From assembly GCF_006345805.1 (NCBI RefSeq), contig NC_043024.1, positions 16,058,001 through 16,122,000 on the forward strand: a stretch of DNA of 64,000 nucleotides, given 5' to 3'. This document shows positions 2,161 to 24,031 of this stretch, one piece after another (the stretch's first letter is position 1; each line of letters begins with the position of its first letter). The notes under the pieces are model-generated. The model was not told the origin of the DNA. It made no database searches and worked only from the letters and a program-made list of their open reading frames with translations. The position numbers and the translations under genes were made by a program. This DNA comes from Octopus sinensis (taxonomy: Eukaryota).

Positions 2161-2277
2161 TTCTAAACCCCGTTCTTGTCTGGTACGGTCATCACAAGAC
2201 TGAGAAATAGTACACCAGCGACAGTCGGTATCAGACAAAAGTCCTCGATAAACTGGAGCAGCTGCTGTTAGAGCTAA
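2161..2277 (-). CDS. GCLC-like: GCLC-like gene, coding exon 8 ([39 protein letters not shown]); gene continues left of the window
   Basis: TTTCCAG acceptor, GTAAGT donor, 117 nt. Aligns to GCLC [39 protein letters not shown]. Confidence 0.93.
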
Positions 2278-2830
2278 CTGGAAATTAAAATTTTAAAAAT
2301 TCATTCGTTAACGATTACATGAAACACCATAAAACAATGTATAATAAGCAATTAAAGATAAAAATTAAATTTTAAAATTAGAGGTATGTATAATAGTTTC
2401 TGCTTTAGGCATAAGGCAAATAATCTTGCTGGTGGAAGAGCTGGTACCATCAGTTTCAGTACATGTCTGTTATTTTTATATCATCAACCCAGAATTGATA
2501 ACTGGTAAACTTGACCCTGGTGATATTTGAACTCAGAAAAAAAAAATACTAGAAGGAATACAACAGGGAATTTCTTCCAATGCTTTAATGATCCTACCTT
2601 TGGAGTTAGAATTAATGTAACACAATATTTTCTCTATAAATCTATAGAAAGAAGTTATTACATCTATGGGGAATAGATGAGATAATATAATAACTCTCTC
2701 TCTCTCTCTCTCTTTTTCTTTTGTTTTCTATTCATCTCTCCAGCTCTCTTTTTCTCTCTCTCTCCCACTCTGCTTATCTCTCACTCTATCTCTCCCACGA
2801 TATACATATATATATATATATATATATATA

Positions 2831-3131
2831 CTAGCAGTATCGCTCAGCGTTGCTCGGGTTTGTAGGGGAAATAACTATATAAGCATTTTTAGATAGTTAC
2901 TTCCCTTATATAAACCGAGCAAAAAAATGCATTAAAAATGTGGAAAAATTATGGTAATTTTTTTTTTTAAATCGTAGACTCATCATAGACACGCGCTAAT
3001 AAGGGCTTGATATGAATCACGACTATAAGATACCCACTTTTGGTTAAACTGCACCACAAAATGTGGGAATAGTTAGGAATCTAAATCGGAGTAGACTGAC
3101 ACACACACAACTTCAGTTTTATATATAAAGA
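2831..3131 (-). mobile_element. Non-autonomous Helitron-like element
   Basis: On the minus strand it starts TC and ends CTAG between A and T, with a degenerate GC-rich subterminal hairpin; same terminal design as 12043-12557. Confidence 0.55.
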
Positions 3132-3942
3132 TATATCCCACTCTTTTTATCTCTCTCTCTCTCCCACTCTATTTATCTCTCTCTCTCTCACCCTCTCTCT
3201 CTTTCTCTCCCTCTCTGTTGAGCATATTTCTCTTTATGTCTATGAAGAGTTCAGTTGATAAATTTTAATGTCTTTCACTCATCCTCTCTTCCTCTATCCT
3301 TTCTATGTTTATAGTTCTGCACACACACCGAAAAGTATTGTTGCCAAAACAAACTGAATACCCAGTCAGCCGTGCCAAATCGTCTCATTATTTTCATACA
3401 ACACAGTGTGTTATATATTCTATGATAAAGTTTAATCTAAGTTTGTATGTGCAGAGCTATTTGAAACTTAAATTGCTTGAAAAATAACCAGTATTTTGGC
3501 ACTTCATGTGTATTCCCATTTCTGTTATTTTCCTCGTATCATTTGGTATGAAAACATATTTTGTATATGTCACAAAGTACATACGGAAGCAAAACAAACA
3601 TAAATGTCTTGTTTATCAATTATTTAGTTACATTATTTTACATACGTTTCATTAACAAAGAATGACTGTTAATTACAATGTGTAAATTACATAATTAAAA
3701 TGCATTCTTAATTATTCAGAAATATGTAGCCTTTACATGTAATATTATTGGTTGTAGTTGGTGCTTATCCCTTTGCAGTTCAATAATCCAATAATGCTAC
3801 GAATAAGGTTTGAAGATTAGATATTACATTTTGAAAATAGAAATATCATTATTTCTAAATCTCTCTAAAGGAGACTATGGCAGCAGTCCATTACAAGCTT
3901 CAAACAGGGGAGGGCATCAGTTTCCCACGCTGGCTCAAGCAT

Positions 3943-3983
3943 CAACAGACTAGTTTCAGAGTATTTACCCCTTATCAATGCAG
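3943..3983 (-). ncRNA. Degenerate minimal type-I hammerhead ribozyme motif (U3:A8 variant)
   Basis: CTGCA-TTGATAA-GGGG-TAAATA-CTCT-GAAA-CTAG-TC-TGTTG; stem I is imperfect. Confidence 0.5.
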
Positions 3984-4239
3984 AGCAGCCAAACCCAGCA
4001 GGTATCACTGTTGATTATCTGTTTGAAGGTTTATTTATATTCAGTGGAATACATCCACTGGTTTTTAAAGATAGAAATATTATTATTTCTAAATCTCTCT
4101 AAGAGAGACTACGGCAGCAGTAATGGATATTAATAGTTATCGCCAATCTAACATGGCAGTCCAGGAAAATAAGACGAATGCTGCCATTGATTAATTTCAA
4201 GAAGCCATTGCCTAGCGATGCCTGCTGTATTCAGCTACT

Positions 4240-4280
4240 CCACATTGATAAGGGGCAAGTATCTCAAAACTAGTCTGTGG
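4240..4280 (+). ncRNA. Degenerate minimal hammerhead motif, mirror copy (GAAA changed to AAAA)
   Basis: CCACA-TTGATAA-GGGG-CAAGTA-TCTC-AAAA-CTAG-TC-TGTGG; perfect 5-bp stem I but G12 is lost. Confidence 0.45.
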
Positions 4281-5034
4281 ATGTTTGAGCCAGCATGAGG
4301 GAGCTGATGACCTCCCCTATTCGAAGGTTGTAATGGACACAAGTTCATGTGTCACATAGCTAGCTAGAAGCAATGGCCTCTCTGAGCTAATCAATGGCAG
4401 ATTCATCCTGTTTTCCTGGACTGCCATGTTAGCTTGACGATAACTATTAATACATTTTGATTGTGCAGCAAATAATCGTTTTTTGTTAATGAAACATACG
4501 TAAGGTGGTGCATCTAAATATCTTATAAGCAATTGCATGGCTCATGTTTTGTTTGTTTGTGTGTGTGTGTCTTGACAGTCTACTCTGTGTGTGTGCATGC
4601 ATATGTGTATGTGTATATGCATGTGTGTGTGTGCATGCACGCATGTGTGTTGACAGTCTGCTTTATGGTCACATTATGTTGTTTGACGGTGTACTTTGAC
4701 AGTGTAGTTTGACAATGTAGTCAATGTTGATAATATAATGACTGTTAAAAGTATTTATCTGGTGGAAGTATGTATGGTATATGTTGGAAATATATATAAA
4801 CAGTATAGTTTATGTTGATATTCTAGTTTATACTGACAATATAATATTTGTTAATAGTGCAACATATTTTGTAAGGTTATCTATGTTGACAGAATATATT
4901 AATAATGTACAGTTAAATGCCTGGTTTAAAACAGTTAACGATGTAGTATTCTGTTAAACTTCAGAATCTAAGCGCTACTGAAAATATAATTTCTGCTGAT
5001 ATCTTAACAAAAGGATAAATAAAGTGATGCCAAC

Positions 5035-21492: not shown

Positions 21493-21894
21493 CATCAGCA
21501 AATCATAAGTCCAAAAGACAAGTTACAAAGCAATAATAGAGTAATTAGATAAAGATAGTTATGACCAGTCTATGGGCTCTGTCCTAGGTTTCACATCCAC
21601 GAAGAGCTTAGCTTTACGGTGTTACTTCAGACCCTGGCCATTAGGATCTGAAGAAACACCATAAAGCTAAGTGCTTTATGGACATGAAACCCAGGGTAAG
21701 CCCATGACTATCTTTATCCAATTTTGTGTGTGTGTGTGTGTGATTATTCAGTTTTATTTCAAGATTTCTTGCCATAAGAGAAAGAGCCGGTTTCTAACCT
21801 AGATCCAAGGTTCTTTTATTGGAATTTCTAATAATAGACCTGCTCGTTGTTCCTACACCTGTGTTCGTCTTTTGTTTTTTGTATTTAAATTATA

Positions 21895-23225
21895 TGTGTA
21901 TATATATATATATATATATATATATATATATATATATATATATATCTGCACACGAGCAAGGGGCTGAAATGTTCCTGGCTTTGGGGGTCAAGGAAAATAC
22001 AAGAGGATCAGTTAATTATCAATTTATTCAACTTTCTGTCTCAGATTCATATAAATGTAATATGTGACAATTATTCGGTAGCCAAGATAAAACTCCAAGT
22101 TTTGGATGCCGAGGTGGAAATCCATGCCACCATCTCTTCAGTTATCCAGCCATTATACAAATGACCATTATACAAAGGGAAATTACTATGTTATTGACCG
22201 CTATTATGACAAAAGAGCTATTCGAATGACCACAAAGTAAGGCCCGTGGGTAAAAAGTTCATAGTATTCACGTAAGCACGCCTGTTCATACCTACACATG
22301 TGCGCCCGCACACCCACATATACATATACATATATATATATATATATATATAATATATATATATATATATATATATATCTGCACACGAGCAAGGGGCTGA
22401 AATGTTCCTGGCTTTGGGGGTCAAGGAAAATACAAGAGGATCAGTTAATTATCAATTTATTCAACTTTCTGTCTCAGATTCATATAAATGTAATATGTGA
22501 CAATTATTCGGTAGCCAAGATAAAACTCCAAGTTTTGGATGCCGAGGTGGAAATCCATGCCACCATCTCTTCAGTTATCCAGCCATTATACAAATGACCA
22601 TTATACAAAGGGAAATTACTATGTTATTGACCGCTATTATGACAAAAGAGCTATTCGAATGACCACAAAGTAAGGCCCGTGGGTAAAAAGTTCATAGTAT
22701 TCACGTAAGCACGCCTGTTCATACCTACACATGTGCGCCCGCACACCCACATATACATATACATATATATATATATATAATATATATATATATATATATA
22801 TATATCTGCACACGAGCAAGGGGCTGAAATGTTCCTGGCTTTGGGGGTCAAGGAAAATACAAGAGGATCAGTTAATTATCAATTTATTCAACTTTCTGTC
22901 TCAGATTCATATAAATGTAATATGTGACAATTATTCGGTAGCCAAGATAAAACTCCAAGTTTTGGATGCCGAGGTGGAAATCCATGCCACCATCTCTTCA
23001 GTTATCCAGCCATTATACAAATGACCATTATACAAAGGGAAATTACTATGTTATTGACCGCTATTATGACAAAAGAGCTATTCGAATGACCACAAAGTAA
23101 GGCCCGTGGGTAAAAAGTTCATAGTATTCACGTAAGCACGCCTGTTCATACCTACACATGTGCGCCCGCACACCCACATATACATATACATATATATATA
23201 TATATATATATTATATATATATATA
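21895..23225. repeat. Three near-identical tandem copies of a ~430-bp unit joined at (TA)n tracts
   Basis: TCTGCACACGAGCAAGGGG recurs at about 21945, 22379 and 22806; matching ORFs in the track are offset by 433 and 427 nt. Confidence 0.93.
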
Positions 23226-23244
23226 TACATATATATACATACAC

Positions 23245-23406
23245 CACTTGAAGCAGGGATGGTAAAGAACTTCGTGATTCACAAGGAATTCTGCAAAGGT
23301 AGCAAGAACACTTTGATGAACTTTTGAATCAGCAGTCTGTAGTTAGTGAGGATGTTCTCAATCTCATCCCTGGATTACCCATGAAGGCAGCACTTGCAGA
23401 GCCACC
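23245..23406 (+). mobile_element. RTE LINE fragment duplicating 24921-25083
   Basis: SRDGKEL..DSQGIL...QEHFDELLNQQSVVSEDVLNLIPGLPMKAALAEPP; roughly 90 percent identical by eye. Confidence 0.85.
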
Positions 23407-23674
23407 ATGTATGTATGTATATATTTATATATGAATGTATGTATGTATGTATGTATGTATGTATGTATGTAAGTATGTATGTATTAGCACAACAAGCTTC
23501 CACACAATTTCTGTATCTACCAAGTTCACTCCACCCGCAAAGCACCGGTCGATCTGAGGCTAAAGTAGAGAATACTTACCCAATGTGCCATGCTGTGGGA
23601 CTGCTATTTCGTAGCATGCCAGTGGCTATATAAATTTTCAACAAAATCGGGAAAGCTACATGTCAAGAACTCAC

Positions 23675-23824
23675 CTCGTCGCCCCAATAAAACGGAAAAT
23701 TTTTGGGGTCCTTATATTTGTTATACTGATGAACAAACTGCCTTCTTGCTTGTTTTTTGATATGTGGAATATAGGGTTTAATCTCTTCCCATTTCATTAG
23801 GGTACCATCTGTAACAAAGGCCAT
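23675..23824 (-). CDS. GCLC-like: GCLC-like gene, first coding exon (MAFVTDGTLMKWEEIKPYIPHIKKQARRQFVHQYNKYKDPKNFPFYWGDE); exon extends as 5'UTR to an acceptor at 23890
   Basis: ATG in AAAATGG context, 50 codons ending WGDE, GTGAGT donor; strong TTTCTATTTACAG acceptor 66 nt upstream of the ATG. Confidence 0.94.
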
Positions 23825-24031
23825 TTTTATTTTGACTGACAAACGTTTCTTTCAGTCAGTTTAACTCTGATCTTCTCTTTTCAGTAAGGACTGTAAATAG
23901 AAATGAAAGAAAATGGGAAACTTTAACGTGCAAAACCTTTCTCAACCATTTTTTACCTATCGACCCCTTTGATTACTATTTTATTCTGGTGGACCCCCAT
24001 AGTCATTTGATGTTTAAAAACTAGTCTTATA

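Follow-up and report, generated by a model that had tools for sequence, protein, structure and literature searches.

A remodelled GCLC paralogue of Octopus sinensis and its putative octopod family of gamma-glutamyl-type ligases

The window analysed here, a 64-kb stretch of the Octopus sinensis genome (CM016886.1:16,058,001-16,122,000), carries on its minus strand part of a gene related to GCLC, the subunit of glutamate-cysteine ligase (GCL) that carries out catalysis; we refer to it as gene A. To our knowledge, animals are thought to carry one GCLC, which is rate-limiting for glutathione synthesis. The octopus lineage has a nearly unchanged GCLC plus about seven derived copies, in which substrate-side residues have been rewritten in a paralogue-specific way, and gene A is one member of this octopod-specific, GCLC-derived enzyme family, with about seven genes per Octopus genome. 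Based on sequence comparison, we suggest at roughly even odds (a probability of about 0.5) that the product of gene A is an active ATP-dependent gamma-glutamyl-type ligase with a shifted substrate or regulation. Judging from the same residues, the acceptor to which it couples glutamate (or a similar acid) is probably something other than cysteine. A literature search found no prior description of an octopus or mollusc GCLC duplication, of the remodelled pocket or of the parallel duplicates described below.

Gene A and the octopod paralogue family

The original prediction had placed eight GT-AG exons with an uninterrupted frame of 314 amino acids (aa) at 2161-23890. Splicing reproduced the eight exons, which run from 23824 to 2161 and give 942 nt without a stop codon, with GT at every donor and AG at every acceptor. 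The exons of the predicted span therefore stand, and its start at 23890 does not, since the ATG lies at 23824. The exon chain was assembled from open segments bounded by AG and GT that matched the predicted lengths, and one biologically coherent chain was recovered. The 314 aa agree without a single difference with residues 1-314 of an independent RefSeq model, P0327 (XP_036370436.1 / XP_036370437.1; 606 aa, O. sinensis), titled 'glutamate--cysteine ligase catalytic subunit-like [Octopus sinensis]'. Gene A is thus already annotated in RefSeq, as a public but uncharacterised gene model. A motif scan of the minus strand located WGDE at 23686, MDSFTFGAGCCSLQ at 5151, LQVTFQ at 5115 and DCRW at 2226. 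The exons in the window are as follows.

Exon 1, 23824..23675, minus strand: 150 nt, ATG at 23824, residues 1-50 with a WGDE end (D49; E50, an Mg ligand) and a GT donor; identical to P0327
Exon 2, 20836..20730, minus strand: 107 nt, begins with IEY; E52 is an Mg ligand
Exon 3, 18899..18792, minus strand: 108 nt, in frame; PEY...MEG, with E91/E98 equivalent to yeast E96/E103
Exon 4, 11165..11100, minus strand: 66 nt
Exon 5, 9253..9137, minus strand: 117 nt; ends with HPVY where canonical GCLC has HPRF
Exon 6, 7061..7003, minus strand: 59 nt; RDRIKNMVYRRKERTATNVP where canonical GCLC has xTLTRNIRxRRGEKVAINVP
Exon 7, 5252..5035, minus strand: 218 nt; remodelled loop MDSFTFGAGCCSLQVTFQAA where canonical GCLC has MDxMGFGMGxxCLQVTFQAC
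Exon 8, 2277..2161, minus strand: 117 nt, final exon within the window; DCRW (R295, equivalent to yeast R313) and SCDDRT
Putative alternative upstream 5' exon, 40510-40466, minus strand: 93% match to the first 15 aa, MRELITWRENKILQ, of the Octopus vulgaris model P0001; a weak candidate

The window part makes up the N-terminal 52% of the 606-aa protein. The whole gene has 16 coding exons over 68 kb, the same number of coding exons as human GCLC, with exons 9-16 at a distance of 11.5-44.5 kb beyond the first position of the window. The O. sinensis locus used for the downstream part (L004) agrees with window positions 1-33824 at 100% identity. The O. vulgaris gene A also has 16 exons, all with GT-AG junctions, and an intact coding sequence of 1821 nt. 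The O. vulgaris model P0001 omits exons 1 and 3 and starts at the upstream exon that matches window 40510-40466. Both omitted exons are intact in the O. vulgaris genome, and exon 3 is skipped by two O. vulgaris models. No second GCLC-like sequence was found elsewhere in the 64-kb window; a second WGDE in the six-frame translation, at 26705, was rejected as an exon of such a sequence, being a chance match in a low-complexity repeat.

Gene A had been predicted to be a cephalopod or mollusc GCLC paralogue, and the cephalopod paralogue is borne out by a separate canonical copy with an MGLL start on a different chromosome of O. sinensis. In three Octopus species, O. sinensis (P0212), O. vulgaris (P0338) and Octopus bimaculoides (P0337), the canonical GCLC is carried by another chromosome of much larger size, and Argonauta hians has a canonical GCLC as well (P0227). 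The octopus canonical protein has 649 aa, starts with MGLLSEG and carries SSHPRFKTLTRNV and MDAMGFGMGCCCLQLTFQAC, with HPRFKTLTRN and MGFGMGCCC among its motifs. Its identity to gene A is 53%, and no other canonical GCLC exceeds 48% identity to gene A. By closeness to the GCLC of other species and by single copy number, the orthologues are P0212, P0338 and P0337 and not gene A. The idea of one single paralogue has to be given up, as there are about seven of them. In Octopus, the members of the divergent family recovered by database searches fall into seven types, A to G.

Type A: P0327, P0001, P0344
Type B: P0328, P0002
Type C: P0341, P0038
Type D: P0330, P0003
Type E: P0342, P0427, P0331
Type F: P0343, P0423, P0426
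Type G: P0428, P0429, P0335

The O. sinensis members are P0327, P0328, P0341, P0342, P0428/P0345, P0003 and P0424/P0425, and all family members of O. sinensis and of O. vulgaris are located on one chromosome. In O. sinensis, B and a neighbour occupy 15.83-15.88 Mb and A occupies 16.01-16.08 Mb. The O. vulgaris accessions of B, C, E and A are consecutive (CAI9741796-799), and three of the four map to a stretch of about 0.3 Mb on a single chromosome. Four of the about seven paralogues are arranged in tandem. Argonauta has at least one family member (P0347), which is 62% identical to A and lies on a contig other than that of the canonical gene. No squid or cuttlefish member turned up in the database searches, and the Logan-derived P0218 resembles the canonical GCLC of another cephalopod. 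In an exhaustive search of 50%-cluster protein representatives with paralogue B (P0002) as the query, P0038 alone exceeded 47% identity, which is consistent with the family forming a single 50% cluster.

The exhaustive search of representatives also revealed divergent GCLC-like proteins in other lineages, namely Bulinus, Mercenaria, Mytilus, Tachypleus, Lingula and one further eukaryote (P0244, P0194, P0044, P0203, P0049/P0208 and P0041). Like A, the duplicates from Bulinus truncatus (Btru_050935), Mercenaria (XP_045165777), Mytilus (XP_076117635), Tachypleus (XP_076326353) and Lingula (XP_013418129) are uncharacterised predicted proteins that have the catalytic core and are changed at the same positions. 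Unlike the octopod family of seven genes, they are single-copy and have other replacement residues. The Bulinus copy, whose locus tag adjoins that of the canonical gene, is independent of the octopod family.

Where these duplicates came from was approached through the informative sites of sequence quartets. The sites joined the family and the octopod canonical GCLC against other molluscs and non-molluscs by 7:1:0, suggesting that the family arose inside the cephalopods, and they joined the Octopus family and the Argonauta member against canonical GCLC by 58:4:0, suggesting that the family is older than the Octopus-Argonauta split. For the order of the duplication and the split from the P0218 lineage, the counts were 3 versus 7, an ambiguous result exposed to long-branch effects. 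The Bulinus duplicate grouped with hygrophilan canonical GCLC by 5:0:0. Together with the 7:1:0 quartet, this points to at least two independent origins, one in octopods and one in snails. A neighbour-joining tree with 200 bootstraps joined all the divergent paralogues with a support of only 16-58%. We rejected this grouping as long-branch attraction because both the identity ranking and the quartets tie the octopod family to cephalopod GCLC and the Bulinus copy to hygrophilan GCLC. One ancient clade of all divergent duplicates has no support for octopods or Bulinus and could apply to the other lineages.

Catalytic core and substrate-side residues

The 314 aa from the window matched yeast Gsh1 (3IG5) with an E value of 1.6e-51. 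With the Pfam GCS family (PF03074; cut-off 25 bits), the window part scored 124.8 bits, full-length P0327 scored 462 bits and the canonical octopus GCLC scored 592 bits. The yeast Gsh1 numbering was rebuilt from a HMMER alignment to 3IG5, 42 sequences were aligned, and the residue roles for the yeast positions were taken from Table 3 of a study on the Leishmania GCL (PMC5613772). According to this table, E50, E52, E96, E103 and E470 bind three Mg2+ ions, glutamate is held by Y362, E52 and R472, the cysteine moiety by E96 and W445, and ADP by D49 and K451 (PMC5613772). In the alignment, A keeps all the Mg, ATP and glutamate ligands of yeast Gsh1. Yeast D49, E50, E52, E96, E103 and R313 correspond to residues 49, 50, 52, 91, 98 and 295 of A, and, outside the window, Y362, W445, K451, E470 and R472 correspond to 328, 405, 411, 422 and 424. 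The retention of E50, E52, E91, E98, LQVTFQ and DCRW, which had been noticed from the window alone, was reproduced in the alignment with canonical GCLCs.

An AlphaFold2 model of A built from a 69-sequence alignment reached a predicted local distance difference score (pLDDT) of 90.4 and a predicted template modelling score (pTM) of 0.92. An alignment of 7 sequences had given a pLDDT of 31. Foldseek aligned the model with 3IG5 at an E value of 4.9e-53 and template modelling (TM) scores of 0.89/0.80, so that, as modelled, the product of gene A has the glutamate-cysteine-ligase fold. A resembles the group-2 GCLCs (human GCLC and yeast Gsh1; PDB 3IG5/3IG8/3LVV/3LVW) in fold (TM 0.89) and sequence (32% identity to yeast), and it shares with them the motifs LQVTFQ, DxRW, DDRT, KSRY, NW, GW[RK][IV]EFR and DFENAA. 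It differs from canonical GCLC in being about 43 residues shorter, in belonging to a multi-copy family and in having about 10 times more differences between O. sinensis and O. vulgaris.

The substrate side of A was compared with a reference set of 26 canonical GCLCs from yeast, a cnidarian, an echinoderm, arthropods, annelids, nemerteans, molluscs and cephalopods. The 26 sequences have 174 near-invariant columns, 92 of which fall in the window part, and A differs at 22 of these 92. All eight substitutions listed in the original prediction (R>V181, F>Y182, L>R185, R>V190, M>F240, G>T241, M>A244 and C>S248) were reproduced against yeast and the 25 other canonical GCLCs. The claim that the replaced residues are near-invariant holds, in yeast numbering, for R196, F197, L200, M258, G259, M262 and C266 and fails for R205, so that R196V, F197Y, L200R, M258F, G259T, M262A and C266S sit at near-invariant columns. 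The canonical motifs HPRFxTLTRNIR, MGFGMGxxC, EGTPG and SVDDRT are not matched by A. Further changes beyond that list include T105K, G107R, A248L, V321C and R23K, among others; T105 and G107 stand just after the Mg ligand E103. Outside the window, the stretch around W445 and K451 has been rewritten from HFENIQSTNWQTMRFKPPPP to HIQAVIGSNWQSLKLKLPDE.

In a Leishmania model built on the yeast structure, Ld Met322 (Sc M262, A244 in A) and Ld Gln328 (Sc Q268) belong to the glutamate pocket, and Ld Thr101 (Sc T105, K100 in A) is near the ADP ribose (PMC5613772). This mapping suggests that the remodelling touches all three substrate sub-sites and not the cysteine pocket alone. The changed sites had been proposed to line the cysteine and glutathione pocket; for the M262 equivalent, the Leishmania model points to the glutamate pocket instead.

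Within the loop, positions 240, 241, 244 and 248 differ among the paralogues, and the neighbouring Y236, M237, D238, F242, C246, C247 and Q250-A256 are invariant in the family. This placement of changed positions between family-invariant residues suggests that the remodelling is targeted and not diffuse. The loops read as follows.

Loop of A: FTFGAG (O. bimaculoides FTFGGG)
Loop of B: MTFAAG
Loop of C: KLFGLG
Loop of E: P[VI]FGAG
Loop of G: K[SL]FGV[SC]
Loop of the Argonauta member: LLFGTG

The version of the loop that is specific to each paralogue is mostly common to its orthologues across species, a pattern which, as far as the loop sequences go, would be predicted by specialisation rather than drift.

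The same positions have changed outside the octopods. The alignment shows the catalytic residues to be kept in all the divergent duplicates of the non-octopod lineages, with W445 lost in Lingula. When the 174 near-invariant columns are compared over the seven divergent lineages, 22 of them differ from the canonical residue in four lineages or more; a permutation expects 5.1 such columns and gave a maximum of 13 in 2000 runs. T105, M258, M262 and V321 are changed in all seven lineages, and R23K, G104[S/A] and G107 in six of the seven.

Function of gene A and alternatives

Gene A evolves under purifying selection, as the original prediction had supposed. In the orthologous locus of O. vulgaris (L001), the exons are about 98% identical to those of O. 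sinensis and the introns 92-96%. Over the 942 nt of the window part, the two species differ by 13 synonymous and 6 nonsynonymous changes, with a ratio of nonsynonymous to synonymous rates (omega) of 0.117. Over all 606 codons, there are 20 synonymous and 10 nonsynonymous changes (synonymous rate, dS, 0.057; nonsynonymous rate, dN, 0.0069; omega 0.12). The B orthologues gave an omega of 0.13, and the paralogues A and B, compared with each other, a dS of 0.49 and an omega of 0.27. In amino acids, O. sinensis and O. vulgaris differ at 11 of 606 positions in A and at 1 of 649 in the canonical GCLC, which indicates that A is constrained, but about ten-fold less than the housekeeping gene.

Considering the retained catalytic ligands and the rewritten surroundings, we suggest that A would act as an ATP-dependent carboxylate-amine ligase: glutamate, or a close analogue of it, would be phosphorylated at its gamma-carboxylate, and an amine would then attack the acyl-phosphate. 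The replacements that may surround the substrates are those in the M258-G259-x-x-M262...C266 loop, T105/G107, HPRF...TLTRNIR, V321 and the W445 stretch, and most likely they would alter the regulation or the substrate (acceptor and/or acid). In that case, the family would consist of specialised gamma-glutamyl-type ligases beside the canonical GCLC. There is a bacterial precedent for such a switch. The glutamine-synthetase (GS)-like gamma-glutamylamine synthetases GlnA4 (PMC9826267) and 1-naphthylamine GS (8X6Z) and the carboxylate-amine ligase YbdK (1R8G) share the GS/GCL superfold, and in them the amine acceptor has been switched while the Mg, ATP and glutamate chemistry is kept. They are weaker structural matches to A (TM 0.25-0.46, at most 12% identity), belong to other families, are bacterial and are not derived from GCLC.

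Non-canonical synthesis of gamma-glutamyl peptides by GCLC has been linked to protection against ferroptosis. If the paralogues do have new substrates, they would represent a new branch of animal gamma-glutamyl metabolism and a natural mutational map of GCLC substrate specificity, and they could supply the gene for a molluscan gamma-glutamyl-amine synthetase activity known for some 40 years. If they are ordinary isozymes or decaying copies, the family is a routine lineage-specific gene expansion.

Several observations weigh against a ligase with a shifted substrate or regulation. Both contacts of the cysteine moiety, E96 and W445, are retained in A, which leaves room for an alpha-amino-acid acceptor, cysteine included. 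Some of the altered positions say little by themselves: R205 varies among canonical GCLCs (V in Argonauta, T in C. brenneri), M262 maps to the glutamate pocket and not to the cysteine pocket, and the position of C266 is an Ala in the Leishmania enzyme and is therefore not invariant across group-2 GCLs (PMC5613772), which makes the C-to-S change alone uninformative. The 150 nearest 50%-cluster representatives include 53 in which the core is kept and M258 or M262 is missing, and some of these may be ordinary GCLs of other eukaryotes, indicating that the motif alone does not define function. The clustering of changes on the same invariant columns in different lineages could partly come from unequal constraint and not from adaptation. 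Some sister paralogues have lost R313, Y362 or W445, suggesting that constraint is relaxed in some of its branches. Y362 is replaced by F in most paralogues, including A of O. bimaculoides, and paralogue B has T at W445; paralogue G has lost all three residues. With these replacements, canonical binding of an alpha-amino-acid acceptor is hardly to be expected of G and B. Documentation of the family consists of gene models and, for a sister paralogue, a single directly submitted GenBank entry (QHX41528.1). The two lesions considered below, one in each of the species compared, also count on this side.

It may also be proposed that A is still a Glu-Cys ligase, an isozyme with an altered regulation (e.g., GCLM-independent or glutathione-insensitive) or a tissue-specific role, in which the motif changes would tune the kinetics and leave the identity of the substrate as it was. 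This would agree with the purifying selection on A, with the conservation of all the catalytic residues together with E96 and W445, with a Leishmania GCL that functions with Ala at the C266 position (PMC5613772) and with the many distant GCLC homologues that lack MGFGMG. However, regulation alone poorly explains seven copies with differing loops that are conserved among orthologues. M258, M262, T105 and V321, which known or presumed GCLs share without exception from yeast to mammals, are changed in every divergent duplicate examined, W445 is lost in two of the paralogues, and the canonical GCLC has been retained with its single difference between species. We therefore consider an isozyme of this kind possible, though on the unlikely side.

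A second alternative is that A is a decaying or non-catalytic duplicate, either recently disabled or with a non-enzymatic role, and that its altered motifs reflect relaxed constraint. In A of O. sinensis and O. vulgaris, every canonical ligand position is kept except the Mg ligand E50 in O. vulgaris, where codon 50 is AAG (K) in place of GAG (E) (exon 1, L001 28026-28175). This E50K may represent a polymorphism, an error or an actual loss of activity. In the O. sinensis assembly, one T is missing from the beginning of exon 13 (GGTT>GGT, L004 ~62122), a frameshift compared with O. vulgaris, and exon 16 contains a compensated -1/+1 pair (L004 ~78236-78242) that turns NDSVVSE into NDLFVSE. Splicing P0327 from the assembly breaks between exons 12 and 13, which was traced to this 1-nt deletion. 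At exon 13 the RefSeq protein reads KVDENF like O. vulgaris, a reading that canonical splice sites do not reproduce there; it thus ignores the exon-13 deletion and follows the exon-16 indel pair. The gene had been described as intact, and this stands within the window, where there are zero frame disruptions and the omega is at the level given above, but not for off-window exon 13 in the O. sinensis assembly. The O. vulgaris models without exons 1 and 3, the 11 differences in A against 1 in the canonical GCLC and the three residues missing from paralogue G also fit decay. Against it stand the omega of 0.12 over 606 codons with exons above the conservation level of introns, the intact 16-exon reading frame of O. 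vulgaris, the retention of every other catalytic residue in A and the persistence of the family since before the Octopus-Argonauta split. Furthermore, sister gene B was reproduced exactly from the same O. sinensis assembly, which suggests that the indels in gene A are local; they may be assembly errors in short T runs or real changes. Decay or loss of catalysis thus appears improbable.

The ligase reading has a special case in which the family of A would be a gamma-glutamyl-amine synthetase for biogenic amines (histamine, dopamine, serotonin and octopamine). The gamma-glutamyl-amine synthetase activity, known from the biochemistry of Aplysia and further gastropods, is ATP-dependent and is also present in Limulus, and we know of no gene assigned to it. 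In gastropod nervous tissue, monoamines are inactivated by gamma-glutamyl conjugation (PMC6454038), and a 'gamma-glutamylhistamine synthetase' characterised in Aplysia appears in the reference list of PMC4472778. The formation of gamma-glutamylhistamine and gamma-glutamyl monoamines in molluscan nervous tissue goes back to Stein & Weinreich 1983 and McCaman et al. 1985, as cited in PMC4472778 and PMC6454038. This is the same type of reaction as would be predicted for an amine-accepting GCLC-derived ligase, in partly overlapping taxa, but it is known as an activity alone, mainly from gastropods. A planorbid snail, bivalves, a horseshoe crab and octopods all carry divergent duplicates of GCLC, and an amine acceptor would lack the alpha-carboxylate that W445 binds, the residue lost in B, G and Lingula. 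We nevertheless regard this assignment as quite improbable for the family of A, because gastropods, unlike cephalopods and bivalves, rely on this route (PMC6454038), paralogue A keeps W445 and the activity is not known to have been tied to any sequence. A broader version, in which the octopod family and the snail, bivalve, horseshoe crab and brachiopod duplicates would all be invertebrate gamma-glutamyl-amine/-X synthetases that arose via parallel pocket changes, with a different acceptor for each octopus paralogue, seems improbable to us.

Other features of the window

The introns of gene A are filled with microsatellites, SINE-like (short interspersed element) repeats, a reverse-transcriptase fragment and a 66-bp satellite. 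The satellite occupies positions 1-1898 in intron 8 with 28.8 copies at 96% identity and a GC content of 53%, against about 37% around it. It runs past the window edge, has further copies at 32.5-35.7 kb of L004 and contains long artefactual open reading frames on both strands. The other features are as follows.

~7930-8762, minus strand: reverse-transcriptase fragment of a retroelement in intron 5 (Pfam RVT_1, 36.5 bits; YADD motif)
21899-23237: tandem repeat in intron 1, unit of 427-433 bp, 3.1 copies, 98% identity
14382-14724, 21035-21491, 26306-26606, 30324-30715 and 31681-32078: long TA, ATAG and ATAC microsatellites
48276-49562, minus strand: single-exon open reading frame of 428 aa with at least 10 C2H2 zinc fingers (Pfam zf-H2C2_2, 276 bits)

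The zinc-finger reading frame has a counterpart in O. vulgaris, a 382-aa gene at 248-1396 of L001, and belongs to the well-known expansion of zinc-finger (ZNF) genes in octopus.

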